Source: Macrostomum lignano (lineage: Eukaryota). From it: a stretch of DNA of 64,000 bases. The stretch is taken from the NCBI GenBank assembly GCA_002269645.1, contig NIVC01001330.1:62001-126000 (forward strand), in the 5' to 3' direction. Of this stretch, positions 10,101-54,001 are shown in pieces. The notes below the pieces were generated by a model. It had not been told where the DNA came from. It did no database searches and saw nothing but the letters and a program-made list of their open reading frames with translations. The position numbers and the translations under genes are program-made. The number at the start of each line of letters is the position of its first letter. Position 1 is the first letter of the stretch.

Positions 10101-13100
10101 TTCAGTCCTAGTCAGCTATTGAGTCCTACTCGGCATCTTCAGTCCTACTCAGCATCTTTAGTCCTACTCAGCATCTTCAGTCCTACTCAGCATCTTCAGT
10201 CCTACTCAGCATCTTCAGTACTACTCAGCATCTTCAGTCCTACTCAGCATCTTCAGTACTACTCAGCATATTCAGTCCTACTCAGCATCTTTAGTCCTAC
10301 TCAGCATCTTCAGTCCTACTCAGCATCTTCAGTCCTACTCAGCATATTGAGTCCTACTCAGTCAGCTGTGAGGCGTCACAGCTCATCATGGATGCCAATC
10401 GAGCTGCCGTAGTCCGTAGCAGCGGAGCCGGCGAAGTCCGTCAGTCTCGCCAGCACCTCGTCTTTGCTCAGACCGCCGTCCAGGTTTGAATCGACCGTCT
10501 TCATCAGCCTGTCAGCTTCATCAGCCAGCTCAGCCGCCTCAGCTTCAGCCTCAGCCTCCTTGCTGTGAGCCGGTCCAGCCGAGTCCACATAATCCAGCAT
10601 CTTCTCCATCTCCTCCGCGTCCATATAGCCGTCCTTGTTCACATCCCAGACGTCCTTGAAATTCTTGGCGTCCTCGTCCGGCGCTTTGGGATCGGTTGCG
10701 GCCGGTGCTCCGGCCAGGAACTCGGCCAGAGACACTCGGCCATCGCCGTCCGAGTCCAGCCGCTCCATGGCCTCCAGCGCCAGCACCCGGCGCATTGCGG
10801 GCGAGGCTGCGGCAGCGCCCTCGGCGGCCCCTTCGGCCAGGGCGAACGCCGCAAATTCGCGCCGATTCAACCGGCCGTCGCCGTCCTCGTCGGCGGCTTC
10901 CCAGCGTCGGCGATCGCGGCCGAGTTCCACCGCCAGCCGATGCTGATGCTCCGCCTCGCTGCCGCCGCCGTCAGCTTCCGTTCTTGTTGACTTTGTCGGC
11001 TCCGGTGTCTCAGGAGGTGGCATCTGCGGCACGCCAACATTGATGCCGGCTTTGTCAATCCCAGTCTCCTTGCTAGCCTCATCAATAGCTCGTTTCACCT
11101 CGGCTTGGAACTCCGCCTGCTGCTGTTGCTTGGCTTTTGCCTTTTCCTCTTCCGAGCCGGAAGCGGTTCCAGTGTCCACGCTTGCAGCTCGGCGAGCAGC
11201 GTGACTGTCCCAGTCCAGGAAGCTGTCTGCTCCATCAGTGGTCAGGTTGTAGGCTTGCCAGGTCTCATCCAGCTCTCTAGCAGCCTGCTGTCTGTTGGCT
11301 TCTGCCAGCCATGCAATCAGCTCCTGACGGCTCACCTTCCCGTCTCGATTTGCGTCCAGTTTCTCGTCGAAAAGTTTGTCCAAATTGGACCGGGCCTTGG
11401 CTAGCTGCTCCGGAGTGAAATCCTCGGAGTCTGGAGAGTCTGACTCCGGTGCTGGCTGTCCTGCATCATCTGAGCTGTGTGCTCTGTCTGCTAGCAAAAC
11501 TGCTAGCAATAGCGCCAGGTTGAGAAGCTTCTGTAGCTGCATCATTCTTGCTCTGCTGGTCTGCGTGTGTGCGTGTGTGCAATGTTTTTGTCCAGTCAGT
11601 TTATTTATAGCTTTCCAAAAATTGGCCTACCTACTATTATTGTGCCAATGTGCTCGTTTGAGTCTCGAGGTTTCCTTAGCCCATCTCTCTCTCTTTATTG
11701 TTCCTGTGACCCCACCACCTCAGCCTTGTCTTGTCTCACGATGAGTCAGTCAGTGCAGCTGTCCACCTTTCGCACAATGTGGGGGGGGGGGCATAAAATT
11801 CAAGACAATTTATTTTTAGAAACTTATACTTGGATTATAATTCTTAATAGTAAAATCTGGAATTACTAATAAATGGAATATGAAATAAGTTGAAATATCT
11901 GTTTTTTATGATATCAACTTTTTACGTTAAATCATTAAACTGAAAATATGACATTTTTATAGAAGTAGATTTCTCTTTCGAACACACTTCGAACATTGGC
12001 TGTTTGAGCTTTCCTTGAGTGGACGCTAGTTTAGGAAAAGCCAAGGACTCCTAAAGCTCTCCCTGGACTGGACGCTAGTTTAGGAAAAGCCAAGGACTCC
12101 TAGAGCTCTCCCTGGATTGGACGCTAGTTTAGGAAAAGACAAGGACTCCTAGATCTCTCCCTGGATTGAACGCTAGTTTAGGAAAAGCCAAGGACTCCTA
12201 GAGCTCTCCCTGGACCGGACGCTAGTTTAGGAAAAGTCATGGATTTCTTAAGCTTTCTTTTGACTGGACTGTAGCCTGCGAAAAGCCGAGGACTTTGACT
12301 TTAATTCTAGAGTTCTCGTAGACTGAACGCTAATTTTGAAAATGTCATGGACTCCTAGAGCTCTTCCTGGACTGGATTAATTTTGGGAAAAGTCAAGGCC
12401 TTCCAAGAGCTCTACTGGATGTGGAAGTCTAGATTTTATGGCATTATATATGTCTCGTTTTCAATCCAGACAACTTCAAGGAAGTCCCTGGTCAGTTTCC
12501 GCTCGCTCGTAGTTCAATACACGAATTGCTTCTGAAAGATTTATAAATATTGTCAAAATTGCTTTCACAGGTGAAGCAAGGCTTCATACCCGTGTCAACT
12601 CTGGTGCAGGAGAAAGTCCGCAGAACCTGGTGTCGCTTCTGTCTGATGCAGTTTCATCTGGTTAGTTGAGGGTCTTGTTTTGTTGTAACCAGCACTGTGA
12701 AGAATATCTTGTGTAAATGAGTAATTTAACTTCGGTTTCTTCAAATGTTTCTATTCTAGAAAAAGGGTCGCCAATACGAGACCCGAAGTCAATACTGTCC
12801 ATGCGACCTGTTCTCAGGGTGAGTTTTCTTAATTTGCCATTTGAAATTCTTGATCTCATTTTATTTCAGGCATCGTAATATTAAGCACGTTTGTGTTATT
12901 GTTTTTTTCAGCATTAAAAGTCGCATGGTATCCGCTCTGATGTCGCTGATCCAGACTCCGCAAAACAATTTGCGAGTGTTCAAGGTAGGCAGGATTTGTG
13001 ACTTCTCTATCAGTATTACTGTTTGTTGGGAACAGCCATCGAAGGTGTGCAGCTGTATTTTTTGAAAACCCGCAGGCCTCTCCCAAAAATTGCTCAGTTC

Positions 13101-15567
13101 TAATGTTCAGCGTTTTCTAGAGACATTTAGCTCTAATCTGCCCTCTTTCCTATTTAATCGCAATGAAACTCTTTCCTAGAAACACCCAATCTCTATGTAC
13201 ACTCTTTCCTAGAAACACTCAATCTCCATGTACACTCTTTCCTAGAAACAGCCAACCTCAATGTACACTCTTTCCTAGAAACACCCAACCTCAATGTACA
13301 CTCTCCTAGAAACACTCAATCTCAATGTACACTCTCCTAGAAACACCCAATCTCAATGTACACTCTCCTAGAAACACCCAATCTCAATGTACACTCTTTC
13401 CTAGAAACACCCGACCCCAATAAACTCTCCTAGAAAAACAACCGCAGTGTACACTCTTTCCTAGAAAAACCCAACCTCAATGTACACTCTTTCCTATAAA
13501 CACCCAACCTCAATGTACACTCTTTCCTAGAAAAACTCCACCGAAATGCACACTTTTCTAAAAGCAATCAGCCCAAAACACACTCTTTCCTAGAAAACTT
13601 AATCACAATGTACACTGTTTCCTAGAAAAACCCAACCACAATTTGAAATTTCCTAGAAACACAGTCACAAAGTACGCATTCCTAAAAACAATGAACCCCA
13701 ATTCACTCTTCGTCAAAAACACCCGATCCCAATAAACTCTTTCCTAGAAATAAAGTTTTTTCCTAGAAATATCCAACGTCGACGTCGGATGTTCAGTCGA
13801 TCGACGCATGCCAAATTCTCAAAAGCGCACACCCCATTCCACTCACCCCAGAATGGCACCCCAGCCTACATAGTCGGCAACGAGTCTCCAGCCGATCTCG
13901 CAGCCTGTCTCCGCGAGTTCTTCGACATTCCTCCGTCATCTTCCTCGTCAACCAACGCCGAGGTGACAGACGAGCAGCTGGTTGCGGGATTCGTGGAGAC
14001 CCTCTACCAGGCACTCACCTATGAGTTCAAGTCGCTACCCGTCTCTGATGAGGCCCCTGTGTCAGCTTCTGCGGAATTTTCCTATCCAGCTGATTCGCAC
14101 TACTCGCAGCTGTGCTCAAGGCGGATGCAAGAGGAACAACAGCAACAGCAGCAGCAACCCACCCAGCTCAGCATCAACTGTGTGCTGGGCCGAATTCTGT
14201 CTGTTCAGCTGCTTGATCGGCTGGGTATTGATGGCACCCTGTCGCATTATAACCGACTGGTCAAGTTCCTGCAGGACAATGATACCGCTTGGTGAGCTGC
14301 TCTTGTGATTTATGAGAATCTGCACTGAGTGATTCATGAGAATCTATCATGAGTGATTCATGAGAATCTGCACTGAGTGATTCATGAGAATCTGCACTGA
14401 GTGATTCATGAGAATCTATCATGAGTGATTCATGAGAATCTGCACTGAGTGATTCATGAGAATCTGCACTGAGTGATTCATGAGAATCTGCACTGAGTGA
14501 TTCATGAGAATCTGCACTGAGTGATTCATGAGAATCTGCACTGAGTGATTCATGAGAATCTATCATGAGTGATTCATGAGAATCTGCACTGAGTGATTCA
14601 TGAGAATCTGCACTGAGTGATTCATGAGAATCTGCACTGAGTGATTCATGAGAATCTGTCATGAGTGATTCATGAGAATCTGCACTGAGTGATTCATGAG
14701 AATCTGCACTGAGTGATTCATGAGAATCTGCACTGAGTGATTCATGAGAATCTATCATGAGTGATTCATGAGAATCTGCACTGAGTGATTCATGAGAATC
14801 TGCACTGAGTGATTCATGAGAATCTGCACTGAGTGATTCATGAGAATCTGCACTGAGTGATTCATGAGAATCTGCACTGAGTGATTCATGAGAATCTATC
14901 ATGAGTGATTCATGAGAATCTGCACTGAGTGATTCATGAGAATCTGCACTGAGTGATTCATGAGAATCTATCATGAGTGATTCATGAGAATCTGTCATGA
15001 GTGATTCATGAGAATCTGCACTGAGTGATTCATGAGAATCTGCACTGAGTGATTCATGAGAATCTGTCATGAGTGATTCATGAGAATCTGCACTGAGTGA
15101 TTCATGAGAATCTGCACTGAGTGATTCATGAGAATCTGCACTGAGTGATTCATGAGAATCTATCATGAGTGATTCATGAGAATCGGTCATGAGTGATCCA
15201 TGAGAATCGGTCACACCCCCGCAGGGACTGCTCCAAGGGCAGCCTGAAGGACTTCGTGGAGTCGCTGCAGGCGCCGCTGTCGGTGATCCAGTCCGCGCAG
15301 CACTACGAGGCCTATCTGACATCCCTGGTTGCCAAGGACTGCTCAGTCATGCTCACCCTCGCCCCCAGCCGCCTGCCAGCTAGCGAGCTGCCAGACAGCG
15401 TTGCCCACGCCAAGGACCCCGTGTCCGGTCGAGGACTCCTAATGAACCTAGCCATAGTAGACTTGGATCCGAAACCGTTCGATAAAATTCGGTTAAACTA
15501 CAAAGAGGATCTCGAGGCGTTGCGCGGCTTTGATGCGACTGCGGCGAAGAACCACCGGCAGGACTGA
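4127..15567 (+). CDS. IPPK: Inositol-pentakisphosphate 2-kinase, 9 exons, 581 aa
   Basis: Exons 4127-4312, 5998-6060, 7630-7923, 9582-9779, 12571-12660, 12760-12818, 12912-12984, 13852-14291, 15225-15567. All introns are GT-AG with matching phases; total 1746 nt. Motifs: YRGEGN, VLRFRK, LCIELK/VKQGF, CRFCLMQ, YCPCDLFSG, PQNNLRVFKNG, AKDCSVM, IVDLDPKP. Confidence 0.93.
4405..5915. repeat. 20-bp minisatellite GTAGCTGCATCAGGGAGAGG (IPPK intron 1)
   Basis: About 75 copies. Confidence 0.95.
6615..7315. repeat. 20-bp minisatellite GAGATAGATATGAGTAGGGT (IPPK intron 2)
   Basis: About 35 copies. Confidence 0.95.
7944..9544. repeat. Compound 21-bp then 40-bp minisatellite (IPPK intron 3)
   Basis: TGCAGTCTTTGTAGCTTAGAG about 7 copies, then a 40-bp derivative about 36 copies. 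Confidence 0.95.
9934..10360. repeat. 19-bp minisatellite AGTCCTACTCAGCATCTTC
   Basis: About 22 copies, abutting the stop codon of the nested gene. Confidence 0.9.
10376..11545 (-). CDS. Reticulocalbin/calumenin (CREC family) ER-luminal EF-hand protein, intronless, nested in IPPK intron 4
   Basis: 389-aa ORF with an N-terminal hydrophobic signal peptide. EF-hand loops DANRDGKVSRQE, DEDGDGRLNRRE, DSDGDGRVSLAE, DVNKDGYMDAEE, DSNLDGGLSKDE plus a degenerate EF2. C-terminal FAGSAATDYG and HDEL-stop. Confidence 0.93.
   Translation of the reverse strand: MMQLQKLLNLALLLAVLLADRAHSSDDAGQPAPESDSPDSEDFTPEQLAKARSNLDKLFDEKLDANRDGKVSRQELIAWLAEANRQQAARELDETWQAYNLTTDGADSFLDWDSHAARRAASVDTGTASGSEEEKAKAKQQQQAEFQAEVKRAIDEASKETGIDKAGINVGVPQMPPPETPEPTKSTRTEADGGGSEAEHQHRLAVELGRDRRRWEAADEDGDGRLNRREFAAFALAEGAAEGAAAASPAMRRVLALEAMERLDSDGDGRVSLAEFLAGAPAATDPKAPDEDAKNFKDVWDVNKDGYMDAEEMEKMLDYVDSAGPAHSKEAEAEAEAAELADEADRLMKTVDSNLDGGLSKDEVLARLTDFAGSAATDYGSSIGIHDEL
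11601..11625 (-). promoter_or_regulatory. TATA box and CCAAT box of the nested EF-hand gene
   Basis: Minus strand TATAAATAA at 11601-11609, about 56 nt upstream of the ATG, with CCAAT at 11621-11625. Confidence 0.5.
12020..12400. repeat. 49-bp tandem repeat GGACGCTAGTTTAGGAAAAGCCAAGGACTCC...
   Basis: About 4 good copies plus degenerate copies. Confidence 0.85.
13170..13760. repeat. ~33-bp minisatellite ACTCTTTCCTAGAAACACCCAACCTCAATGTAC (IPPK intron 7)
   Basis: Degenerate tandem copies. Confidence 0.85.
14305..15212. repeat. 24-bp minisatellite GTGATTCATGAGAATCTGCACTGA (IPPK intron 8)
   Basis: About 38 copies, two variants. Confidence 0.95.
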
Positions 15568-15634
15568 CTTGCTTTTTTGTTTTTGGATCACAGTTTTTAT
15601 TGAGAAATCGCCCAGTCTTCCCTGATAGCTGCTA

Positions 15635-16140
15635 TCTAGGAATTGTCCCTGAATATTTCTGGGAATTGTCCCTGAATATTTCTAGGAATTATCCCTGAAT
15701 ATTTCTAGGAATTATCCCTAAATGTTTCTAGGAATTGTCCCTGAATATTTCTAGGAATTGACCCTGAATGTTTCTAGAAATTGACCCTGAATGTTTCTAG
15801 GAATTGACCCTGAATATTTCTAGGAATTGACCCTGAATGTTTCTAGGAATTGACCCTGAATGTTTCTAGGAATTGGCCCTGAATGTTTCTAGAAATTGAC
15901 CCTGAATGTTTCTAGGAATTGGCCCTGAATGTTTCTAGGAATTGTCCCTGAATATTTCTAGGAATTGTCCTTGAATGTTTCTAGGAATTGTCCCTGAATA
16001 TTTCTAGGAATTGTCCCTGAATATTTCTAGGAATTATCCCAGAATATTTCTAGGAATGGTCCCTGAATGTTTCTAGGAATCGTCCCTGAATATTTCTAGG
16101 AATTGTCCCTGAATGTTTCTAGAAATTGGCCCTGAATATT
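15635..16140. repeat. 23-bp minisatellite CTAGGAATTGTCCCTGAATATTT
   Basis: About 22 copies downstream of the IPPK stop. Confidence 0.9.
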
Positions 16141-17471
16141 TATAAGAGTTGCCCTAAATTTAAAATGATACAAAATATTTTTTAGTCCTTTTTACAAAGT
16201 ACAATACGTTTGTCTGTTTGCTTGTCATATATTAATAACATTATTATGCCAACAATTATAATATCCATTACATTTTAATGTCATGACACATTTAGAATGC
16301 TCATTACAGATGTTTAAAGATTCAAACCTGGACTATCATTTAACCATAAAAAATTTTTGTCAAATATTGTTGTTTTTTTCTAAATTTCATTACCCAGATC
16401 TTAGGTTATTCCGTATTGAACAGGTCTTTGTTCTAGCTTCAATTTTAAGTCGCAACTCACTACTTGCGCTCCTCATTTGGCTGGCAGTAGTGCATAAAAT
16501 TATTCTAATTTTGTTTTAATTTTTGTCTCTCCTTGCTTTTCAACCGCCCGCCTTCAGCCGTGTGCTAAAAAACAGAGTTGTTTTTTTCAGCAGTTTTTGT
16601 TCCCTATATATATTTTGCTAATAAATATTTCCCCAACTGTTTCAATGCTTTTCTTTGTCAGGAGGTTTTATCACTGAAAACAGATTTTGAGTTTTTTTTC
16701 AAAAATGCTTTGTAATTTATATCCGTTTTATTATTTTTTAAACTTCCACTCGCTTTGGAGTATTCTGCGTCCTCAGCTGACCATTTCCCAACTATGCTAC
16801 TTTTGTCCCCCCAGCTAATATCAGTAGCGTATTGAGGACATTGTATTTTTATCGCAAGGTTTAGTATTATTGTTATGCCTATTTCAGATTGGTTATCAAC
16901 TCTGTCAACCCCTGTTCGACTGAAGCCGCCCCCCTTTTCGGCGTGAATCGTGACGACCTCTGCGTATTAATTCAGTTTTTCCCAGGCTTCAGTTTTAGCG
17001 CCCGGCTTTTCTAACTCAGCTCACTGAAAATTGATCTTTTTAAGCTCGGCCTTCTAATATAAATAATAATAAATAAATGCGTATTGCGGAGTCAGATTGT
17101 GACAATTTGTTTAAAGTGAAACAAAAGAAATTAAATTCTGCTTATGCAGAAAGAGTCTTTCAAGTCTGAGTATATTGTTGTCTGTATTTGTCTGTTTTTG
17201 AGTCTGTAGCTACTACATGTTTAGGGTGGCTTCAATTTCTAACTGTTGTGGGGTGAACACTGCAAATCGATTAATGATAAATTCTAAACTGATTGACAAT
17301 AAGCAAAGCAGATACGAAAGAGAGCAGCTAGGTGAATGAATAAAATCATATTAAATATTTCACAGACTGTTTGCTGAAATAAATAAATATATGCGAAACA
17401 AATGTCTGCCAGCAAGTCTGAGAGAGAGCTGTTGCGGTGAAATGAGAAAACAGAAAAAATGATTTGCGAGT

Positions 17472-20400
17472 TCAGTAGCCGGTGAGCTCGGCAAAGGTCT
17501 GGTCCAGTTCTTCGCTGATGCCCTTGTAGCGTTCCTTCTCGGACAGGAGCTCGTCTGCGGGATGGGGGAATGCAGTTGGTTGAGGTTTCACCAGTTGGGA
17601 CTTTAGGGAAGTGCCAACTTAGCGTGTGGGACTTTGAGGGTGTGGGATTTTAGAATGTGGAATTTCTGGGAATTGGTTTTGATAGTGTGGGATGGGATTT
17701 CTAGGAGTTGAGATTTCAGGGTGTGGGATTTTTGCATGGGTGTGGGATTTGAAGCAGTGGGATTTGAAGGAGAGTGTGGGATTTGAAGCAGTGGGATTTG
17801 AAGGAGAGAGTGTGGGAGTTGAAGCAGTGGGATTTGAAGGAGAGAGTGTGGGAGTTGAAGCAGTGGGATTTGAGGGTGTGGGATTCGAAGGAGAGAGTGT
17901 GGGATTTGAATCAGTGAAAATAGAGGATGTGGAATTTGAGGGTGTGGGAATAGAGGATGTGGGATTTGAAGCAGTGGGATTTGAAGGAGAGTGTGGGATT
18001 TGAAGCAGTGGGATTTGAAGGAGAGAGTGTGGGAGTTGAAGCAGTGGGATTTGAAGGAGAGAGTGTGGGACTTGAAGCAGTGGGATTTGAGGGTGTGGGA
18101 TTCGAAGGAGAGAGTGTGGGATTTGAATCAGTGAAAATAGAGGATGTGGAATTTGAGGGTGTGGGAATAGAGGATGTGGGATTTGAAGCAGTGGGATTTG
18201 AGGGCTTGGGATTTGAAGCAGTGGGATTTGAAGCAGTGGGATTTGAAGCAGTGGGATTCGAAGGAGAGAGTGTGGGATTTGAATCAGTGGGAATTGAGGA
18301 TGTGGGATTTGAGGGTGTGGAATTTACAGCAGTGGGATTCGAGGGTGTGGGATTTGATGAAGAGAGTGTGGGATTTGAATCAGTGGGAATTGAGGATGTG
18401 GGATTTGAGGGTGTGGAATTTACAGCAGTGGGATTCGAGGGTGTGGGACTCCGAGATATCTACAGTACGAGGAACACAGTGAAATTGGTATTTAAAGTGT
18501 CAATGCTAAGATTACGCTCTTACTAAGATAGAATAACTAAACAAAATCAGGTTAATATTTTGCACGTAGCAATATTGTATAAATAAAAATTATTCACACT
18601 TAATAAAATTACCGGTAGCAATCAGTGCAATAAAGCAAACAAAGTTAAAGACTAGCGGCAGGTTAAATGCAGATTGAATTAACAATTTGAGAGTAAACTA
18701 ATTAAAACCAAATAATAATGTATCATAACTTTCCATAATAATTATGATATTTTTGAGTTAGCCAAGCCGTGTTTGAGGTGAACCACCTGCATCTACCTGT
18801 GCTGTAACGCCGCCTAAATGCTCTCAATCTCTTTGTAGTAGCTCTCCAGCTGGCCCTTCAGCTGCAGGAGGCTGTCCTTCTTCTGCAGCAGCTCAACTGT
18901 AGAGATGAGTTCACCGGATTGATGCAGGGTTGAGGTTGAGGCTGGCTTCGAAAACTTCAAATTTTATTTTCATCAACCCAAGAGACAAGGGCGCCAACCT
19001 AAGGGACAGGGGCGCCAACCTAAGGGACAGGGGCGCCAACCTAAGGGACAGGGGCGCCAACCTAAGAGACGGGCGCCAACCTAAGGGACAGGGGCGCCAA
19101 CCTAAGAGACGGGCGCCAAACTAAGGGACAGGGGCGCCAACCTAAGGGACAGGGGCGCCAACCTAAGGGACAGGGGCGCCAACCTAAGGGACAGGGGCGC
19201 CAACCTAAGATACAGGGGCGCCAACCTAAGGGACAGGGGCGCCAACCTAAGGGACAGGGGCGCCAACCTAAGGGACAGGGGCGCCAACCTAAGGGACAGG
19301 GACGCCAACCAATCAAAGAGACAGGGGCGCCAACCTAAGAGACAGGGGCGCCAACCTAAGGGACAGGGGCGCCAACCAACCTAAGAGACAGGGGCGCCAA
19401 CCTAAGAGACAGGGGCGCCAACCTAAGAGACAGGGGCGCCAACCTAAGGGACAGGGGCGCCAACCAATCAAAGAGACAGGGGCGCCAACCTAAGAGACAG
19501 GGGCGCCAACCTAAGGGACAGGGGCGCCAACCTAAGGGACAGGGGCGCCAACCTAAGGGACAGGGACGCCAACCAATCAAATAGACAGGGGCGCCAACCT
19601 AAGAGACAGGGGCGCCAACCTAAGAGACAGGGGCGCCGACCTACAGTGAATCCCGAATCCAACAGGGTCCTATCCACAACTTCTAATTTCCTCCGACATT
19701 TCTCAGTTTCTTTACCTTCGGCCTCATCAAGCTCCTTCTGCATTTGCAGGGCCTCTCGTTCTGCGGTGAGTGCCCTCTGCTCTGCCTGGGGTTGTCAGTT
19801 TGCATGCAGGTTATTGAGATGCGGGATAAAACAAACCATGCACAGTGACAACAAACAGTACTCAACAAAAAAAAATAGTGAGCATGAGGTAGCTGGAATT
19901 TTCAGGTGGTAGCTGGAATTGTCAGGTGGTAGCTGGAATTGTCAGGTGGTAGCTGGAATTGTCGGATGGTAGCTGGAATTGTCAGGTGGTAGCTGGAATT
20001 GTCAGGTGGTAGCTGGAATTGTCAGGTGGTAGCTGGAATTGTCAGGTGGTAGCTGGAATTGTCAGGTGGTAGCTGGAATTGTCAGGTGGTAGCTGGAATT
20101 GTCAGGTGGTAGCTGGAATTGTCAGGTGGTAGCTGGAATTGTCAGGTGGTAGCTGGAATTGTCAGGTGGTAGCTGGAATTGTCAGGTGGTAGCTGGAATT
20201 GTCAGGTGGTAGCTGGAATTGTCAGGTGGTAGCTGGAATTGTCAGGTGGTAGCTGGAATTGTCAGGTGGTAGCTGGAATTGTCAGGTGGTAGCTGGAATT
20301 GTCAGGTGGTAGCTGGAATTGTCAGGTGGTAGCTGGAATTGTCAGGTAGTAGCTGGAATCGTCAGGTGTAGCTGGAATCGTCTGGGGTAGCTGGAATCCA

Positions 20401-23400
20401 GTTCACTTGATTGCACGCACCAAAAGAAAGTACAAAACACCCAAAAACCCTCGCATGCAGCTGAGAAGTATTGTAAACTTTATGGCAGTTTAGCAAGCAA
20501 GCAAAATAATAATCTGGGACTGGGCAGGCACAGCAGCAGTTGAGCACAGTGCTCAGTCGTACCCTCCAGTCGGTCCACCTCGCTCTGCAGCTTGGCAACC
20601 TGCCTTTCGGCCTCTGTGGCTCGCTGCTCAGCCTGAGGTGTTTCGTGCGTTTTTTGTGAGATTGTTAAACACCAACTGCTAGCTAATGTTCGAGTATTTT
20701 AAAGTCTAACCTTTGTTTCTTGTTATTCATCGCCAGGCCAGATCAATCCAAGGTGTTTTAGAGGCATTCCGTTTTTATAGGAGTTATTGCAAAAATCATG
20801 GTTAGTCAAAAAATAATACAGGATTCGATGGTGGAAGATCCATGAAAAAAAGGAGAGGAAAAAATACTGACTGGATGGAGAAGTGAAAGGGAATAGAAGT
20901 CTGGATATTAGGTTTAGAGTAATTTACAGGGGGAAATTATAGGGGAATTTACAGGGGAGCAATTGGGATCAGGGGAATTTACAGGGGAGCAATTGGGATC
21001 AGGGGAATTTACAGGTGAAGAATTGGAATCAGGGGAATTTACAGGGGAGCAGTTGGGATCAGGGGAATTTACAGGTGAAGAATTGGGATCAGGGGAATTT
21101 ACAGGTGAAGAATTGGGATCTGGGAAATTTACAGGGGAGCAGTTGGGATCAGGGGAATTTACAGGGGAACAATTGGGATCAGGGGAATTTACAGGGGAGC
21201 AATTGGGATCAGGGGAATTTACAGGGGAGCAATTGGGATCAGGGGAATTTACAGGGGAGCAATTGGATCAGGGGAATTTACAGGGGAACAATTGGGATCA
21301 GGGGAATTTACAGGGGAGCAATTGGGATCAGGGGAATTTACAGTGGAAGAATTGGGATCAGGGGAGTTCAAAGGGAAGAATTGGAAACAGGGGAATTTAC
21401 AGTGGAAGAATTGGAATCAGGGGAATTCAAAAGAAAGAATTGGGATCAAAGGAATTTCTCTGATTTTAGATAATAAGAAACAGAGTAATTTACAGGGGGA
21501 GAATCAGGATCGAAGGTAATTTACAGGTAGGGGCGGAGAGAATTGGGATCAGGTGAATAAATTTGATGAGAATGGAAGATGTGGAGAATAAAGGAGACGG
21601 TTAGTAAATGTACGTAGTTAAGTTAAGTCTAGGCATAAAAATAAGTTGCCAAGCAGTAATCAGCAATGATGGAAACGCCTGTTCAACCGAGCTGCATGCG
21701 AGAGTCTGGGATAAGAAAATTTGAAGAAAAAAAGAGTACAAGCAGCTACCTCGTCTACTTTGAACTTCAGCTCCTGAATGTGCTTCTCCAGGTGAGTCTC
21801 CTTGCTTGAGGCCTGCATTTTGTTTCAGTTGGGCATGCAAAGAGGATGCTGTGTTTATGGTTTCATGGTGCATTCCATGCAGCTCAAAACAAAGACTGAT
21901 TCTAAAACACGCGCAAAAAAAACAAGCAACCATGGCATGCTGTAGAAATGAATCGGGGGGAAACGCCTGGCCTGGCAACTAAAATCAATATTTTTTGAAT
22001 AAAACAAGTTTTCTGAATGTCTTTCTCGCGACTCATGCAGGCGGGTCTCACGGTCTTGAGTCGTTCGGACAAGTTCCGGATGGTCTCCTCGTAGGACTCC
22101 TCACGCTGGGCGGCTTCCTGCTCAGAGATCTCCAAGGACTTCATGTTGCTGCCGACCACTCGGAGCTCCTCTTCGAGCTCAAGGATTTTGCTGCAGAATT
22201 TGGTTGGATTAGCGGCTTGGGATCAGAGTGGGTTTGGGGATCGGGATGGGGATCAGAGTGGGTTTGGGGATCTAGATTGGGATCAGAGTGGGTTTGGGGA
22301 TCTGGATTGGGATCAGAGTGGGTTTAAGGATCTAGATTGGGATCTGAGTGGGTTTGGGGATCGGGATTGGGATCAGAGTTGGTTTGGGGATCTGGATTGG
22401 GATCAGAGTGGGTTTGGGGGATTGGGATCAGAGTGGGTTTGAGGATCTGGATTGGGATCAGAGTGGGTTTGGGGATCGGGATTGGGATCAGAGTGGGTTT
22501 GGGGATCTGGATTGGGATCAGAGTGGGTTTGGGGATCGGGATGGGGATCAGAGTGGGTTTGGGGATCTAGATTGGGATCAGAGTGGGTTTGGGGATCTGG
22601 ATTGGGATCAGAGTGGGTTTAAGGATCTAGATTGGGATCTGAGTGGGTTTGGGGATCGGGATTGGGATCAGAGTTGGTTTGGGGATCTGGATTGGGATCA
22701 GAGTGGGTTTGGGGGGATTGGGATCAGAGTGGGTTTGAGGATCTGGATTGGGATCAGAGTGGGTTTGGGGATCGGGATTGGGATCAGAGTGGGTTTGGGG
22801 ATCTGGATTGGGATCAGAGTGGGTTTGGGGATCTGGATTGGGATCAGAGTGGGTTTGGGGATCTGGATTGGGATCAGAGTGGGTTTGGGGATCTGGATTG
22901 GGATCAGAGTGGGTTTGGGGATCGGGATTGGGATCAGAGTGGGTTTGGGGATCGGGATTGGGATCAGAGTTGGTTTGGGGATCGGGATTGGGATCAGAGT
23001 GGGTTTGGGGATCTGGATTGGGATCAGAGTGGGTTTGGGGATCTGGATTGGGATCAGAGTTGGTTTGGGGATCTAGATTGGGATCAGAGTGGGTTTGGGG
23101 ATCTAGATTGGGATCAGAGTGGGTTTGGGAATCTAGATTGGGATCAGAGTGGGTTTGGGAATCTAGATTGGGATCAGAGTTTGTTTGAGGATCTGGATTG
23201 GGATCAGAGTTTGTTTGAGGATCTGGATTGGGATCAGAGTGGGTTTGGGGATCTGGATTGGGTTTGAGGATCTGGAGTGGGTTTGAGGATCTGGAGTGGG
23301 TTTGAGGATCTGGATTGGGATCAGAGTGGGTTTGGGGATCTAGATTGGGATCAGAGTGGGTTTGGGGATCGGGATTGGGATCAGAGTGGGTTTGGGGATC

Positions 23401-26400
23401 GGGATTGGGATCAGAGTGGGTTTGAGGATCTGGATTGGGATCAGAGTGGGTTTGGGGATCTGGATTGGGATCAGAGTGGGTTTGGGGATCTGGATTGGGA
23501 TCAGAGTGGGTTTGAGGATCTGGATTGGGATCAGAGTGGGTTTGGGGATCTGGATTGGGATCAGAGTGGGTTTGGGGATCTGGATTGGGATCAGAGTGGG
23601 TTTGAGGATCTGGATTGGGATCAGAGTGGGTTTGGGGATCTAGATTGGGATCAGAGTGGGTTTGGGGATCGGGATTGGGATCAGAGTGGGTTTGGGGATC
23701 GGGATTGGGATCAGAGTGGGTTTGAGGATCTGGATTGGGATCAGAGTGGGTTTGGGGATCTGGATTGGGATCAGAGTGGGTTTGAGGATCTGGATTGGGA
23801 TCAGAGTGGGTTTGAGGATCTGGATTGGGATCAGAGTGGGTTTGGGGATCTGGATTGGGATCAGAGTGGGTTTGAGGATCTGGATTGGGATCAGAGTGGG
23901 TTTGAGGATCTGGATTGGGATCAGAGTGGGTTTGAGGATCTGGATTGGGATCAGAGTGGGTTTGGGGATCTAGATTGGGATCAGAGTGGGTTTGGGAATC
24001 TAGATTGGGATCAGAGTTTGTTTGAGGATCTGGATTGGGATCAGAGTGGGTTTGGGGATCTGGATTGGGTTTGAGGATCTGGAGTGGGTTTGAGGATCTG
24101 GAGTGGGTTTGAGGATCTGGAGTGGGTTTGAGGATCTGGATTGGGATCAGAGTGGGTTTGGGGATCGGGATTGGGATCAGAGTGGGTTTGAGGATCTGGA
24201 TTGGGATCAGAGTGGGTTTGGGGATCTGGATTGGGATCAGAGTGGGTTTGAGGATCTGGATTGGGATCAGAGTGGGTTTGGGGATCTGGATTGGGATCAG
24301 AGTGGGTTTGGGGATCTGGATTAGGGTTTAATGATCAGAATTTAGGATCAGAGTGGCGGTTTCAGATTAAAAGATACAGAAAGTGCGATAATAGAATTCC
24401 AAGTTGCATTTGAGCGGCGAAAACGAGGATTACACCAGGATACAAACATTAAAAACAATTTTTAGGCATTTAGGCGCGAACAATAATCAATAAGCAATAG
24501 TATCAACTCGAGTAACAAACTGACATGTCAACGCAACCATCAGCATGTTTGAATTGTATATGCTCATAAAATTCTTACTCAAAAAGCAACAGGTTATAAA
24601 CATTATTGCAGCATGCCATTGTCGCTTGTTTCCCTTGCTGAAAAGCAGAGATACCTTCTGCGTGTACTTTTGTTGTCCGTCAACGCTTTGAACCTCTGCC
24701 ACCCCCCCCCCTACACCAATAGCTGGTGAGCATGAGAATTTCAGACCTTCTCCTCGCTGTACTGCAACGACCTCAGATTGATGTTCACGATGGTCAGCTC
24801 GTCGCGGAGCTGACGCGCCTTGGCGGTGGCCACAGAGGCGCGTTCCTCGGCCTCGTCCACCTCTTTGTCCACCTCTGAGTAGCGCTTGTACACCTGCTCC
24901 AGTTGGACACGATGCAAGGTTAGTACATCACAGTCAAGCAGAGAATCAAGCATGCAACACTGAATCAGTGTTTAAAAATTTACAAACTGTGTGGTAAACA
25001 AGCGTGTTAGATATGATTAAGTTATTCGCAAAAAAAAGTTTGTTGCCAAAGATGAGGGCATGCGTTGGGCAGGGTAAACGCTTCAGATTCTGCCACTAGG
25101 AAGGACTCTCGGTCACAGATTGAACTCATTCCGAACATTGGATGGGCCTCTCGCTATCTAGATGTAGGCAATGAAGTTTGTTTGCTTCAGCCTGATGTCT
25201 TTGCAAATATTGCTTGCACCAAGGGGCGCCAGCACCAAGGGGCGCCAGCACCAAGGGGCGCCAGCACCAAGGGGCGCCAGCACCAAGGGGCGCCAGCACC
25301 AAGGGGCGCCAGCACCAAGGGGCGCCAGCACCAAGGGGCGCCAGCACCAAGGGGCGCCAGCACCAAGGGGCGCCAGCACCAAGGGGCGCCAGCACCAAGG
25401 GGCGCCAGCACCAAGGGGCGCCAGCACCAAGGGGCGCCAGCACCAAGGGGCGCCAGCACCAAGGGGCGCCAGCACCAAGGGGCGCCAGCACCAAGGGGCG
25501 CCAGCACCAAGGGGCGCCAGCACCAAGGGGCGCCAGCACCAAGGGGCGCCAGCACCAAGGGGCGCCAGCACCAAGGGGCGCCAGCACCAAGGGGCGCCAG
25601 CACCAAGGGGCGCCAGCACCAAGGGGCGCCAGCACCAAGGGGCGCCAGCACCAAGGGGCGCCAGCACCAAGGGGCGCCAGCACCAAGGGGCGCCAGTACC
25701 AAGGGGCGCCAGCACCAAGGGGCGCCAGCACCAACTAGAGGAACCCCCTGCCCCCTTGGCTACGCCCCTAAGTGCGTTCTAATTGTGTTTTTTCGGTTCT
25801 AGCCATAGACAATAACTTGTTGAAACTAATCAAAATCATGCCATATTATACCTGACTTTACAAGTACGTTAGCAGTTGTCACTAACTAAGGCGAGCGGCC
25901 CATCCAGTGTTTTTAAGTATCTGTGCTCTTAAGTCAGCTTCCTTCAAACGCAGCCTCATCACCTCTCGGCGCTCTCAAGACGCGACTCGGCCCGCTCAAG
26001 GTCGCCCTCGGTGATGGCCAGCTTCCTGGCCGCCTCATCGTACTTCCGGTCGGCGTCCTCGGCGATGTACTTGGCCTCTTTGAGCTGCTCCTCCAGCGTG
26101 TTGATTCGCTCATCATCAGCGATGGAGCGGTTCTCAAGCACCTTGCGACCTCTGCGGTGGATTTTGTTTTTAAAATTGGTCGAGTGCAACCTGAGCTAAA
26201 ACTGCGCGGTGTCGTGACGCTGAGCTCAGGTGCAATGAGTTTTTCATCTATCGCAGCCAATTTTAAAGCAGGCAAACCGTTATGGGTTAGAGAGGTAAAC
26301 CTTTGTCTAATTTTATAGCACTTATTTGTTATAATAGATTATTAATAAATAGCATGTCATTACGTTTAACTTAAGATTTTGTTATAAATCGCAAAATCGC

Positions 26401-29400
26401 GTTGCATTTTTATCGCAAAACTGCTGGTTTCGAATTGGAACTTTAATTTCCAATAAGACTTTAATAATTACGATTTGAATGCGATGAAAATGCATTTTCT
26501 GAACAAAAAATGTTTTCTTCTGTAATTTCTGCGTCGTAAAAAAAGCGGTTAGAGCTACTTACAGTAGGTAGCCGTATAGGCTACTGGCACGCCATACAAG
26601 TACATACAGTACTAAAATATTCAAGCAGCTTTTTAGTGCAAAAAACACAATACAGATCGGGGTTTCGGCGAGCTCCGGCCCAACAACCCCCTCTATTCGA
26701 TACTCTCGGGTCCTTTGAAACTTCACAATAGCAATCCGGCCCCGCTCAAGGTCTTCACGGTTCTCTTCTCTCTCCTCTCCCCCCTCTTGTCTCTTCTCTC
26801 CTTCTCTCAGCTCTCCTCCTCTCTCCTCTTCTCTCCTCTCTTCCCCTTCTCTCAGCTCCCCTCCTCTCTCCTCTTCCCCTCTCTTCTTCTCCTTCTTTCC
26901 TCTCTCCTGTGATCTCCTCTCATCTCTCTCCTCCCCCTTCTCCACTCTTCTCTCCTCTCCCCTCTTCTCCCCCCTTCTGTCCTTTCTCCTCTCATCTCCC
27001 CCTTCTCCACTCTTCTCCCCTCTCCCCCTCCTCTCCTGTCTTCCCCTATTCCTTCATCTCTCCTCTCTCTCCCTCCCTCTTATCCTCTCATCTCTCCTTC
27101 CATCTCTCATCCCATCTATTTTCTCATCTCCTCTTTCTCTCCTCTATTCCCCATGATTTATTCTAGCTGTCATCTGGCCCGCAGTCATGAGCAGGATTCT
27201 CTATCAGGCAATTCAGGTAAAATAAGTTTGCCGACCCCTGAAATACAGACTGTCATTGACCAGCCGTCACCATTAGGATCAATGGAAGTTAGCGCGCAAA
27301 CTATTTTTTATTGTATGGTTAAAGCGATCGATTAAAATGCATTGAATTGAGCTGAAGGAAATCAAACTGTGCCGGCTGCAAAGAGCGGCGGGAGCAAATT
27401 GCAGAAGGAGGGCGGGGCGTCACCTCTGCTTGTCGCTGCTCGTTCTCAGCAGCCAGCTCAGTGGCTTCATCAGTCTGTCGTTCCAGACTCTCCAATTGGC
27501 TGTCCTCGGCGGTCTGGCGGCTGTCCAGCACCTTCAGGGCGCTGCAGGATCGCCGCGTTTAGTTGGATTCCAAAAGCGAGTAGAGTTTTAGATTTTCATC
27601 TATGTGATTGAGTACTGAGCACTCAAAACGGCAAAAATACAAGCAAAGGAAAGTAAAGTAAATATGAATTATAAAAATTGAAAAAAAGAAAATCACGTGA
27701 AGCTTTTAAACGTAGAAACGCAATAATAAACAAAGTCATTTGTTTTATTTAATAATAGGAAAACTTTGAGTCTTCTTACCGCTCACTCTCGTCCGCAGCC
27801 TTGCTGGCCTCCTCAAGTTTCTGGGTGGCCTCGGTGAGTCGGGTCTCAGTCTGCTCGAGATCCTCCTCGATCAACCGGATGCGGCGAGTCAGAGCCTGCA
27901 CCTCGGCCTCGGCCTGTGAATGGTGAAAATTTCATAAAACTTTTATCTATTATAGACTGAAATTCACTTATCTAATTTTGACTTCGTTTTAATAAAATTT
28001 TAAAAATATTAATAATAATAGTAATAATAATAATGATATTAGTAATAATGTTTCGCGTTAAAATAGTAGTATAACAAGAGTGTTACAGACAAGCTAACAA
28101 ACAAATAAACAAATCTTAAAAATTAAGTATAGTTGGTCATTTTATTGCTTTATAAATAAATATAGTTGCGTTTATAATGTTCAATAATGATTTATAATAA
28201 ACCTATTGAAACAATGCTGTGATTTGCAAAAAATTAAATTTATTTTTTATTGATTTTGATTGATTTTTTATTGACAGATTTAGAAAAGAATTGCAAAATG
28301 CATTTATCATACAAATTATTCTAATTTTTTAATCTCTACTGATCGAAGCAGTATAGCCACTTTTAAAAGAAAAATGGAATATGGGCCTAGTATAAAATGC
28401 TGATATCATATATACATATAGAAAATATCAATGAATTTCAATGGAATTTAACAAATTAAATTGATTTATACATTTTCCTTCGAACTTCCATTCTTTATTC
28501 AGGCTTCAGAATTCTAGTAAGAAATTAATTTTTTTGAAATGTTATCAAACAGTTTAGTAAATAAAAAATGAAAAATTTTTTGTAATTAATAAAAAAACTG
28601 AAGAAAAAATTTAATTAATTATAAAAAATTAAAGAAATTGAATTATTCAACAGGTAGCCACCTACTTCTGCTTTTTTGTTCTCCTCTTCTGCGAGCTCAT
28701 TGTCTTTATTTTCCAGCTCTTCTGTAACCGCGTCTAATTCCTTACGCAGCGTCTGCATTTTCTGCTTTAGTATCGTCAAAACACTTTGAGATTGTCCGGA
28801 ATTGGCCATACTGGTCTAGTCAGAAATACTGATACAAAATGTTGTGTAGCGTAGTAAAGAAGTCAAACTACGGAAGTGAAGAATAAAAATAAGCGAAAAT
28901 TAATAGTCACGTGGCAAGTTAAATCTGCGCGAGTGTTATCAATTTAACAAATCCTTGACAACGAGCTTTCAAAATTGTGAAGATACTTAGATAATTATTA
29001 CTTAAGCTCTGTGCACTAATTAATTGCGATAAAAAATTCTAGGAAAAATTGCTTTAACGAAATTGTGTAGCAAGCAAAACACTCACATCATTAGCCCTCT
29101 TTTCAGTGGCCTCCAGGTTTGTGTTAGCACCTGCCAGAGACTCCTGTGCCGTATCAAGTTCCTGCTGCAGCTGTGAAAACTTTTTCTGCAGTTCACCCAT
29201 TTCTTCTTCCTTCTTTGTCATCTCATCTTCCTTTTCTTTAAGCTTCGTTTCTACCTGATCAGCTCTGGAATGTAAAAATGTGGACTTTGCATTAGAAATT
29301 AAATTAGATAATTATTGAACACTAAACGTTACGTGTAATTTTGACTTTCCATTTACAATTTTTTATTTTATCTGAATAATATAATATTAAGGGCTTAAAT

Positions 29401-29562
29401 TACGAGATTAAGACCAAGAACAAGATCAAGAACTTAATTGATAGGTCGTACATATATATACGTGACTAATTGCTTCATTGCATTCCAAAAGCATTATTAC
29501 CTGTCCATTGCATTCTCCTTATCCAGCTTCATAGCCAGCATTTTCTTCTTGATGGCGTCCAT
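17472..29562 (-). CDS. TPM: Tropomyosin, canonical muscle-type isoform (exon set B), 284 aa
   Basis: Exons 29501-29562, 29087-29264, 27780-27913, 25963-26151, 22052-22190, 20563-20632, 17472-17554. All GT-AG and phase-consistent. [18 protein letters not shown]...[16 protein letters not shown]...[12 protein letters not shown]. Confidence 0.95.
17590..18450. repeat. G-rich 15-bp-based degenerate repeat GCAGTGGGATTTGAA
   Basis: Lies between tropomyosin exons 9a and 9b. Confidence 0.85.
18814..29562 (-). CDS. TPM: Tropomyosin, divergent isoform (exon set A), 284 aa
   Basis: Shares exons 1-3, then uses 27424-27541 ([10 protein letters not shown]..), 24747-24893 ([16 protein letters not shown]), 21750-21812 (ASSKETHLE..), 19716-19785 (AEQRALTAE..) and 18814-18896 (VELLQKK..IESI*). 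Exon lengths 118/147/63/70/83 restore exactly 284 aa; all splice sites are GT-AG. Confidence 0.85.
18985..19640. repeat. 21-bp minisatellite GGGACAGGGGCGCCAACCTAA
   Basis: About 30 copies. Confidence 0.95.
19888..20390. repeat. 20-bp minisatellite GGTAGCTGGAATTGTCAGGT
   Basis: About 24 nearly identical copies. Confidence 0.95.
20925..21560. repeat. 30-bp minisatellite AATTGGGATCAGGGGAATTTACAGGGGAGC
   Basis: About 17 copies plus a degenerate tail. Confidence 0.9.
22215..24325. repeat. 30-bp minisatellite GATTGGGATCAGAGTGGGTTTGGGGATCTG
   Basis: About 70 copies. Confidence 0.95.
25218..25735. repeat. 16-bp minisatellite GCACCAAGGGGCGCCA
   Basis: About 32 nearly perfect copies. Confidence 0.95.
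26760..27150. repeat. CT-rich low-complexity tract
   Basis: Almost pure pyrimidine on the + strand. Confidence 0.85.
28666..28809 (-). CDS. TPM: Alternative first exon (1b) of tropomyosin, giving short 252-aa isoforms
   Basis: ATG at 28809, 48 codons [26 protein letters not shown]...KKAE, then a phase-0 GTAGGT donor. Lies between exon 2 and exon 3, the usual position of the internal-promoter exon 1b. Confidence 0.85.
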
Positions 29563-37099: not shown

Positions 37100-37680
37100 C
37101 AGAGTGTGACAGACGAGTCGCAATTCTTGTTCAATTTCGACTTGGCCAATCTGCCCCTGAGTGCCTGCAGATGCTTTAAAAAGCATTGGGTGATGAAGCC
37201 CCATCCCAGACGATGGTGTACAAGCGGTTTGGTCGTTCCCGTTCTGGCCGCCTAGAGCTGGACGATGATGAACGCGAAGGCCGTCCGAATTCGAATATTA
37301 CGAACGCATCAGTGGCCAGCGTCCGAAGACGGCTCGATGAAGATCGACGAGTGACGGATCGCAAAATCGAGCAACATGTGATCGGGATTCCCGATTCAAG
37401 CGTCATTTTACTCTTGCATGATCATCTAGGCATAAGGAAAGTGTCTGCGCGCTGGGTGCCCCATCATTTGAACCCGACCCAGATGCAAGCTCGTGTTGAG
37501 TTCGCTAACTTCATGCTTAACAATTTCGATGCAGGGGCTTCAAAATTGGTGGACAATATCCTGACAGGAGATGAAACTTGGGTTCACTTTTTTGGCTTAG
37601 AGACGAAATCCCAGAGCAAGCAGTGGATTGCCTTCGAGAAGGATGCCCCCATCAAATTCCCCAAGAAGTGTCGGCAAGGT
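37100..37680 (+). mobile_element. Truncated mariner (Tc1/mariner) transposase pseudogene
   Basis: N-terminal HTH region; in-frame TAA at 37177-37179; DDDEREGRP, RKVSARWVPHHL (37453) and ILTGDETWV (37564). The sequence diverges before the second and third catalytic Asp. Confidence 0.9.
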
Positions 37681-38502
37681 CTTTACAGCATTCTTCTTCT
37701 GGCGGTGTGGCACATGTGGCACACATTTACTTTTCTTTTTAGCCTAGTCAACATAGGACTAAGATTTAGTAGTCTTTAAGACAAAAAAATTCAACAAATT
37801 GTCAAATAAATTCAATTTGACAACAAAATAAAGCGCAGCTGATACACAGTTACGAGTATGAGCACATAATTCTTAGCTGCAATGCAAACAAGTGAGCCTT
37901 CAAATACTTTGTAATATTTGAGTGTTGCGTCCAAGTATCTTCTAGTGGTCCTTGTGCTGCCACTATTGTAAGCTGGAGAAAATAGCTAACGCATTTGAAA
38001 GAATTTCGTCTCGTCCCTTCTTGGGCATCACAGCATCATGCCAAGGTGAAGCGCGCGACCATCTCTTTTTTTCTTCTCTCTCCACTCCATCTCTCTCCAC
38101 TCCAGCCAAAAATAAACTGTACACCTATTCCAAGCTCAAACAGAATGAGTGCACTTACTTTGGCGCTCTCATTGTGTTATTAAATACACTAAGAAGCCGG
38201 GATATTCCACACAGGATGCCGGGAATTTACGAGTTCGGAAATCCAAGATATCCGGCCTGAACAAAACCGGGAGACTAACGCTTTCTGCATGTGAGAAAGG
38301 CAGATATTTTGCTTTCGTCTCTTGTGCATATCCGTGAATTATTTCTGAATCATAGAATATATATACAGGTGAATTCACAGCAGTGTTTGTGCAATAAGCA
38401 GTGGCTACCGCACTGCTCAAGAAGTATTTTATCTGGAAAATACAAATACTCAAAGCGTAAAACCGCCGCGTCTGAATTCATTCCGGAAAATTGCTGCCCA
38501 AC

Positions 38503-41164: not shown

Positions 41165-42470
41165 TTTCTGATTGTCTCACTCTCCCACTCATATTTTATA
41201 ACTGTATTGTTTTCTCACTCATATTTTGTGACTGTCTGACTTTCTCACTCATGTTTTGTGATTGTCTCACTCTCCCACACATATTTTATAATTGCCTTGT
41301 TTTCTCACTCATGTTTTGTGACTGTTTCACTCTCCCACTCATATTTTATAATTGTATTGTTTTCTCACTCATGTTTTGTGACTGTTTCACTCTCCCACTC
41401 ATATTTTATAATTGTCTTGTTTTCTCACTCATGTTTTGTGATTGTCTCACTCTCCCACACATATTTTATAATTGCCTTGTTTTCTCACTCATGTTTTGTG
41501 ACTGTTTCACTCTCCCACTCATATTTTATAATTGTATTGTTTTCTCACTCGTGTTTTGTGATTGTCTCACTTTCTCACTCATATTTTGTGATTGTCTCAC
41601 TTTCTCGCTCATATTTTGTGATTGTCTCACTTTCTCGCTCATATTTTGTGATTGTCTCACTTTCTCACTCATATTTTGTGATTGTCTCACTTTCTCGCTC
41701 ATATTTTGTGATTGTCTCACTTTCTCACTCATGTTTTGTGATTGTCTCACTTTCTCACTCATATTTTGTGACTGTCTCACTTTCTCGCTCATGTTTTGTG
41801 ATTGTCTCACTTGCTCACTCATCTTTCGTGATTGTGTCGCTTGCTCACTCATATTTTGTGTCACTTGCTCACTTATATTTCGTGATTCTGTCACTTGCTC
41901 ACTCATCTTTCGTGATTGTGTCACTTGCTCACTCATATTTCGTGATTGTGTCGCTTGCTCACTCATATTTCGTGATTGTGTCACTTGCTCACTCATATTT
42001 CGTTATTGTGTCACTTGCTCACTCATATTTCGTGATTGTGTCACTTGCTCACTCATATTTCGTGATTGTATCACTTGCTCACTCATATTTTGTGATTGTC
42101 TCACTTGCTCACTCATATTTTGTGATTGTGTCACTTTCTTACTCATATTTCGTGATTGTGTCACTTGCTCACTCATATTTCGTGATTGTATCACTTGCTC
42201 ACTCATATTTCGTGATTGTGTCACTTTCTCACTCGTATTTCGTGATTGTGTCACTTTCTCACTCATATTTCGTGATTGTGTCGCTTGCTCACTCATATTT
42301 CGTGATTGTGTCACTTGCTCACTCATATTTCGTGATTGTGTCACTTGCTCACTCATATTTCGTGATTGTGTCACTTGCTCACTCATATTTCGTGATTGTG
42401 TCACTTGCTCACTCATATTTTGTGATTGTGTCACTTTCTCACTCATATTTCGTGATTGTGTCGCTTGCTC
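41165..42470. repeat. 30-bp minisatellite with 60/180-bp higher-order zone
   Basis: ATATTTTGTGATTGTCTCACTTTCTCACTC family, about 43 copies. Confidence 0.95.
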
Positions 42471-47950: not shown

Positions 47951-52365
<4,415 letters not shown>

Positions 52366-53887: not shown

Positions 53888-53960
<73 letters not shown>

Positions 53961-53962
53961 GG

Positions 53963-53998
<36 letters not shown>

Positions 53999-54001
53999 CA
54001 A

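Follow-up and report, generated by a model that had tools for sequence, protein, structure and literature searches.

A tropomyosin gene of the flatworm Macrostomum lignano in which intron loss has likely coupled interleaved alternative exons through the reading frame

We investigated a tropomyosin gene in 64,000 nucleotides (nt) of the genome of Macrostomum lignano, a free-living flatworm belonging to the early-branching Macrostomorpha (assembly GCA_002269645.1, contig NIVC01001330.1, positions 62,001 to 126,000). This whole stretch is hereafter called the window, and positions are counted within it unless another locus is named. Downstream of one shared exon 3, the gene carries two sets of alternative exons, A and B, which are interleaved along the chromosome and have different boundaries, as seen in the exon map and in the comparison with other flatworms. 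We consider it likely that this is a single tropomyosin gene with the layout of other flatworms, that three introns lying between exons of the same set have been lost from it, and that the choice made at exon 4 has become binding as far as residue 234.

The gene is located on the minus strand, running from 29562 to 17472, and comprises 13 coding exons. The coding part of exon 1a (29501–29562, 62 nt) starts a long form of 284 amino acids (aa) and is followed by exon 2 (29087–29264, 178 nt; residues 21–80). An alternative first exon, 1b (coding part 28666–28809, 144 nt; donor GAA/gtaggt, the slash marking the boundary), starts a short form of 252 aa and is similar to exon 1b of other invertebrate short forms (protein P0002). 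All three match the tropomyosin profile. The shared exon 3 (27780–27913, 134 nt; residues 81–125) ends in ..GAGCG/gtaaga, two bases into codon 125. Nine exons follow in the order 4a (27424–27541, 118 nt; residues 126–164), 4b5b (25963–26151, 189 nt; residues 126–188), 5a6a (24747–24893, 147 nt; residues 165–213), 6b7b (22052–22190, 139 nt; residues 188–234), 7a (21750–21812, 63 nt; residues 214–234), 8b (20563–20632) and 8a (19716–19785), both of 70 nt and encoding residues 235–257, and finally 9a (18814–18896) and 9b (17472–17554), both of 83 nt including the stop codon. Exon 9a ends in ..YYKEIESI before its stop, and 9b is a muscle-type C-terminal exon. All nine were found where the initial annotation had placed them, with an AG acceptor and a GT donor, or with a stop codon instead of the donor in 9a and 9b. 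Hence a and b copies are present in tandem for every segment from 4 to 9, with the a copies making up set A and the b copies set B.

The two sets are equal in total length, with 118 + 147 + 63 + 70 + 83 = 481 nt in set A and 189 + 139 + 70 + 83 = 481 nt in set B. Each contributes one base completing Arg125, then 159 codons and a stop (residues 126–284). Both paths yield exactly 284 aa from the 1a-2-3 start, as had been claimed for them, and both yield 252 aa from the 1b-3 start. Path B and a UniRef entry named "Tropomyosin" from Macrostomum lignano (P0056) are identical over blocks of 49 and 97 residues. A search of the six-frame translation with the tropomyosin profile detected no further tropomyosin-like exons in the 64 kb; the same search recovered all known exons except 9a, the most divergent one, and recovered 7a weakly.

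We next considered which exon combinations the reading frame permits. Combining the seven internal exons in order with one or the other last exon gives 256 paths; when all of these were enumerated, 36 remained open to the natural stop and only 8 encoded 284 aa. These eight correspond to 4a-5a6a-7a or 4b5b-6b7b, followed by 8a or 8b and then by 9a or 9b. The three mixed joins that the initial annotation had predicted to shift the frame do shift it: joining 4a to 6b7b leads to a stop at codon 168, 4b5b to 5a6a at codon 221, and 5a6a to 6b7b at codon 217. The frame thus forbids full-length crossing between the series up to residue 234, and exclusive use of the copies is compatible with the frame analysis. 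The proposal that the first choice after exon 3 commits the transcript to one path through residue 234 is therefore upheld for full-length products (8 of the 256 paths), with three in-frame leaks. From exon 8 onward, sets A and B can be mixed freely.

The layout itself is shared with other flatworms. Genomic loci were compared by mapping exons together with their splice sites in Hymenolepis weldensis (L001), Paragonimus skrjabini miyazakii (L002), and Schistosoma margrebowiei (L003), and by tblastn only in Echinococcus granulosus (L005). In each of the three mapped loci, whose boundaries were confirmed, exon 3 is followed by twelve separate exons with AG..GT borders, in the order 4a 4b, 5b 5a, 6a 6b, 7b 7a, 8b 8a, 9a 9b, the six pairs measuring 118, 71, 76, 63, 70, and 83 nt; in Echinococcus, the exons detected follow the same order. 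Together, the loci cover the two paralogous types of tropomyosin gene that parasitic flatworms have, namely the Paragonimus/Echinococcus type and the Schistosoma/Hymenolepis type. Over-merged gene models of tapeworms and flukes had been an early hint of interleaved copies. Moreover, a map of the Schistosoma mansoni gene has been published (discussed below). Interleaved alternative exon sets are thus a common, already published flatworm layout, and the suggestion that two whole interleaved C-terminal halves represent a novel design is refuted. The initial annotation had itself named a layout already standard in flatworms as the finding that would overturn it, and this is largely what we found; what survives is narrower, in that only the unequal exon boundaries, and hence the phase coupling, are specific to this gene.

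The exon order in the window equals that of the three mapped loci with three junctions closed. Since the orientation of the pairs flips from one pair to the next, 4b adjoins 5b, 5a adjoins 6a, and 6b adjoins 7b, and these neighbors are the ones fused in M. lignano. The fused exons are exact sums of the separate ones (4b+5b, 189 = 118 + 71; 5a+6a, 147 = 71 + 76; 6b+7b, 139 = 76 + 63). Exon 4b5b lacks the presumably ancestral intron after residue 164, 5a6a the one within codon 188, and 6b7b the one after residue 213. With three introns between same-set neighbors absent, the boundaries of the two sets differ, which results in the phase coupling. The rule of the flatworm layout, in which each exon is separate and its two copies agree in length and phase, consequently breaks down in the window at 4b5b, 5a6a, and 6b7b. 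Only 8a/8b and 9a/9b are pairs of equal length; within the exon 4–7 block, equal-length, same-frame pairing fails (118 versus 189 nt and 147 versus 139 nt), and 7a lacks a separate counterpart.

The same comparison bears on whether the interleaving could have arisen during assembly, through the merging of two tropomyosin genes that are tandem or allelic. Such a merger would be conceivable, given that assemblies of M. lignano are rich in repeats and practically every intron here contains a minisatellite. However, the same exon order recurs in three further genera whose genomes were assembled independently, and a fourth genus shows it for the exons detected; in addition, the window contains a single exon 3 and no duplicate 5' exons, and its exon lengths fit one frame scheme. 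An artefact of this kind is hardly credible.

Regarding the direction of change, we infer loss rather than gain. Loss in the Macrostomum lineage is favored because it is far more economical than six parallel gains in the parasites. Vertebrate TPM genes have these same intron positions, together with the exon sizes 118/71/76/63/70. The absent introns are the only ones in the exon 4–7 region that could be removed without destroying an alternative exon, and a fourth intron between same-set neighbors, that between 8a and 9a, is still present. Alternatively, the fused exons could be ancestral, with introns gained by parasitic flatworms and none lost in Macrostomum. This would be in line with the fusion of exons 5–9 in the annelid Dimorphilus gyrociliatus, and the free-living flatworms are represented here by one locus. 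It would nevertheless require six introns to be inserted, at the same three positions in the a copies and in the b copies, and this in each of the two paralogous gene types. The positions and sizes also match those of the vertebrate genes; furthermore, the Dimorphilus genome is compacted and its fusion pattern is different. We regard gain as quite unlikely and retain intron loss in the Macrostomum lineage as the preferred explanation.

Two outgroups were tried and proved unhelpful. The locus of Haliotis cracherodii (L004, 3001–3855) encodes a 284-aa tropomyosin without introns, suggesting a retrocopy of a spliced mRNA, and Dimorphilus gyrociliatus (L006, 4417–5813), an annelid with a compact genome, has tandem copies of exons 3 and 4 and its own fusion of exons 5–9 into one exon. 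We also observed, in fluke, tapeworm, and Dimorphilus models, an exon of approximately 200 aa between exons 2 and 3 that does not encode a coiled coil (..LFSDYG..DEDEY..LNSGTLI..; L003, 20032–20640; L006, 3786–4304; proteins P0011, P0013–P0017, and P0042). The end of this exon is the start of TpmII.7 of S. mansoni. No counterpart was detected in the window by tblastn.

Set A looks functional and maintained as coding sequence, judging from its heptad register, high G+C content at third codon positions (GC3), Pfam score, and ancestral exon lengths. Its identity to set B is about 31%. In the register of human TPM1, which is the same for both sets, hydrophobic residues occupy 18 of the 23 heptad a positions and 20 of the 23 d positions of set A, compared with 2–6 of 22–23 at the other positions; in set B, the corresponding counts are 19/23 for both a and d. 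GC3 of set A is 0.61–0.89, similar to that of set B, while the flanking introns have a G+C content of 0.40–0.47. Set A alone scored 86.5 bits against Pfam PF00261 (cut-off, 38.6 bits), aligning to profile positions 85–241 of 242, and the score was 303 bits for the long form of path B and 157 bits for the short form of path A. The lengths of the set A exons equal the ancestral lengths or exact sums of them.

These properties are difficult to reconcile with the view that the set A exons are duplicates in decay and enter no mRNA, so that the gene makes path B only. In favor of decay, no transcript-derived or curated protein with set A was found, P0009 being the only protein retrieved; an exhaustive HMMER search yielded no relatives of set A above 40% identity besides P0009, and identity is about 31% to any known tropomyosin, as it is to set B. 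Conversely, set A remains free of stops for 480 nt over five exons of exactly ancestral lengths with AG/GT borders, its heptad core is intact and in register, its GC3 is coding-like, and its Pfam score is more than twice the cut-off. In S. mansoni, equally diverged a-type exons occur in cloned cDNAs. Decay of set A is therefore unlikely.

The initial annotation had also allowed for set A belonging to a separate gene with its own 5' end. Such a gene would be nested within introns of the first and would have a promoter and a 5' exon of its own. The sets are fully interleaved, and flatworm tropomyosin genes use several first exons, both of which would agree with a nested gene. However, exon 4a begins with the last base of a codon, 238 nt past exon 3, and the intron frame upstream of it contains stops and no ATG. 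Stops are located just upstream of both 4a and 4b5b with no ATG between, which makes a read-through start from the intron impossible for either; both exons thus depend on exon 3. In addition, the profile search recovered only 1a, 2, 1b, and 3 as N-terminal tropomyosin-like exons in the 64 kb, and in S. mansoni, splicing joins the common exon to a-type exons that belong to its own gene. A nested gene is very improbable on these grounds, and we continue to treat sets A and B as parts of one gene.

Further features of the sequence concern the ends of the gene. Several short (242–262 aa) tropomyosins among the set A matches end in a similar way to 9a (..EIESI). No AATAAA or ATTAAA was found between the 9a stop and exon 9b (17555–18813), and a GT lies 17 nt past the 9a stop. 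Transcripts using 9a may be terminated separately or may splice on to 9b as untranslated sequence. In the 5' part, GC3 is only 0.46 in exons 2 and 1b, compared with 0.61–0.89 in 1a, 3, and all later exons, and the G+C content of introns changes from approximately 0.21–0.34 around 28666–29264 to approximately 0.40–0.47 across 17472–27913.

Several observations weigh against the interpretation of this locus as one gene with three lost introns and a binding choice at exon 4. First, the frame lock is leaky: addition of 7a after 6b7b (+21 aa) and skipping of either 5a6a (−49 aa) or 4b5b (−63 aa) remain in frame and keep the heptad. Second, the a-type exons are 16–52% identical in every comparison, and their orthology across flatworms is not provable by sequence; exon-by-exon identity was tried as proof and failed, and the common ancestry of the a-type exons is instead suggested by their conserved position. 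Third, gene models of schistosomes mix a and b exons, as in P0017, which joins 4b, 5a, and 6b. Fourth, the assignment of promoters to paths in the window is made by analogy only. Finally, the sole database protein with set A residues, P0009, is an ab initio model joining 8b, 8a, and 9a with downstream repeats.

For the last reason, P0009 was rejected as mRNA evidence for set A. Its mapped segments are 8b (reached by a frame trick), a portion of 8a, exon 9a, and three pieces further downstream (13869–20650, minus strand), at least one of which lies inside a minisatellite, a 24-nt tandem repeat. The UniRef entry P0056 is likewise an ab initio model, fragmentary and reading into the introns around 4b5b and 6b7b. 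Neither contains path A, and both mis-join exons and introns of the locus. Both public protein models found for the locus are thus wrong, P0056 being fragmentary and P0009 chimeric.

Considering these points together, we propose the following mechanism. The gene has two alternative starts (1a plus 2, or 1b) leading into one shared exon 3, and each of exons 4–9 is present as a tandem pair comprising a conserved copy (b) and a fast-evolving copy (a). This lineage would then have lost exactly three introns, each situated between same-set neighbors and holding no alternative exon, giving rise to 4b5b, 5a6a, and 6b7b. As the two series now break at different codon positions, crossing before residue 234 causes a frameshift and an early stop, and mixed transcripts would presumably be cleared by nonsense-mediated decay. 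The choice between 4a and 4b5b after exon 3 would accordingly bind four ancestral exons, with 8 and 9 left as free pairs. Based on S. mansoni cDNAs, the probable muscle product is 1a-2-3-4b5b-6b7b-8b-9b (284 aa), and based on these cDNAs and the ending of 9a, the probable non-muscle product is 1b-3-4a-5a6a-7a-8a-9a (252 aa). By this analogy, the path through set A is probably the one taken in non-muscle forms, with exon 1b as its start.

If so, six independent exon pairs have been turned into one two-way block and two free pairs, reducing the full-length C-terminal combinations from 64 to 8. Tropomyosin is a textbook example of one gene becoming two proteins from within, and this locus would represent a further step: duplicated exons of the same set that have become neighbors can be welded by ordinary intron loss, and coupling that would otherwise have to be maintained by splicing control becomes structural. 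In practice, the exon 4–7 block would escape predictors that match alternative exons by equal length, and where tropomyosin serves as a muscle marker in this regeneration model, probes should target one of the two sets, B or A, rather than exon 3.

We also searched for RNA helices that could influence the choice of exons, scoring ungapped helices against shuffles, as RNAduplex applied to whole introns gave meaningless end-to-end duplexes. Two candidate pairs of boxes emerged, all on the minus strand. Candidate box Y (24601–24638), 108–145 nt past the 5a6a donor, is complementary to candidate box Y' (21913–21950) in the 239-nt intron between 6b7b and 7a. Candidate box X (21966–21988) lies in that intron as well, 16 nt upstream of Y', and is complementary to candidate box X' (20720–20742), approximately 90–110 nt before the 8b acceptor. 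Y/Y' is the longest inverted repeat in the gene, with 33 of 38 nt paired (−45.9 kcal/mol) and both arms unique in the window, and its pairing would loop out exon 6b7b and a 2.1-kb minisatellite. It scored 62 against a local null of 26.5 ± 3.3, a value reached in none of 500 shuffles (300 nt next to splice sites). X/X' comprises 13 G+C-rich pairs (−26.8 kcal/mol) and scored 34 against a null maximum of 33; it would loop out 7a and concerns the very crossing that the frame does not forbid, the use of 7a after 6b7b. Y/Y' and X/X' cross, so they should exclude each other.

Five control junctions yielded no helix that beat all shuffles, nor did 21 analogous junctions in the three mapped flatworm loci, where no helix comparable to Y/Y' was found. 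The inverted repeats I3 and I4 were rejected as being at chance level by a rough estimate, and a complementarity between a 16-nt minisatellite and exon 5a6a (score, 47) was rejected as lying below the mean of the region-wide null. Against the helix lead, when the maximum was taken across all 12.4 kb of the region, 9 of 200 shuffles reached the Y/Y' score. It is conceivable, though doubtful, that intron loss produced a hard-wired two-way switch in which the use of 7a after 6b7b is policed by two mutually exclusive candidate helices, Y/Y' for path A and X/X' for path B. If true, this would be the first structure-guided exon choice in a flatworm, with intron loss fixing the coupling of isoforms.

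As for the rest of the window, nearly every intron from 4a to 9b contains its own, different minisatellite (17740–27108; such arrays also occur at 13161–16159). These include a 16-nt unit repeated 32 times with 99% matches and a palindromic GGCGCC core (25216–25734), a 30-nt unit repeated 70 times (22217–24322), a 20-nt unit repeated 26 times (19888–20397), and a 21-nt unit repeated 31 times (18974–19643). The minisatellites probably account for the strong G-over-C skew at 20–24 kb. In the AT-rich 5' part of the gene, no tandem arrays above the score threshold were detected. Elsewhere, an uninterrupted reading frame of 389 aa (10376–11545, minus strand) with several EF-hand matches and a C-terminal HDEL looks like an intronless gene for a calcium-binding protein of the secretory pathway. 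A 197-aa frame (37186–37779, plus strand) is probably a transposon remnant; it matches a Tc3/mariner-type transposase weakly, at 19.9 bits, which is below the cut-off. Much of the remaining window consists of long tandem arrays (41251–42698, 46956–48424, 53900–54182, 57733–59496, and 61631–63802), whose translation gives rise to apparent long reading frames on both strands.

The gene can be compared with several published systems, the first of which concerns the candidate helices. In exon 6 of Dscam (PMC6071210, PMC1431710), competing intronic boxes, a docking site and selectors, unite a donor with the chosen acceptor. The candidate pairs Y/Y' and X/X' would have the same geometry, but Dscam uses one docking site with many selectors, whereas the window would have two crossing helices.

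The frame lock also has precedents. Frame incompatibility guarding mutually exclusive exons is standard (PMC5740500): of 28 human genes that have both validated mutually exclusive exons and Drosophila orthologues, 71% have frames that are incompatible upon joint inclusion (Hatje et al. 2017). As in the window, wrong combinations shift the frame; the usual case there, however, involves two exons that agree in length and phase, whereas here blocks of three and two exons with different internal boundaries are opposed. In arthropod myosin heavy chain genes (Odronitz and Kollmar 2008, PMC2257972), lineage-specific intron loss likewise reshapes clusters of alternative exons and leaves fewer transcripts. 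There, alternative exons were fused to constitutive neighbors once the variants had been lost, while the gene in the window keeps both variants and fuses neighbors of the same set. We found no description of such same-set fusion in the literature, in which Irimia et al. (2010) was covered through its 2012 review. According to that review (PMC3342872), most bilaterian lineages underwent their own, independent duplications of tropomyosin exons. The internal paralogs described there resemble the present case in the recurrent tandem duplication of exons, in the assignment of the copies to the long or short promoter form, and in the gradual emergence of two proteins within one gene; going by the same summary, the general principle of internal paralogs was already published in 2010.

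The closest system is TpmII of S. mansoni (Smp_031770), for which Silas et al. (2014) mapped 17 exons, A–Q, with a common exon E (PMC4026961). Its tandem pairs F/G, H/I, J/K, L/M, N/O, and P/Q are approximately 50% identical, and no isoform contains both versions (PMC4026961). Like the gene in the window, TpmII has several first exons, a common exon, E, which corresponds to exon 3, and a tandem pair for each later exon. When exons are matched through the locus of the sister species S. margrebowiei, the cloning primers run from exon 1b to 9a for the non-muscle form TpmII.3 and from 1a to 9b for the muscle form TpmII.4 (PMC4026961). Start 1a is thus linked with the muscle-type last exon and 1b with the other, a pairing that probably also applies in the window. 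The difference lies in what may be combined: in Schistosoma, twelve separate exons form pairs equal in length and phase that are combinable, whereas in M. lignano exons 4–7 have become two indivisible alternatives.

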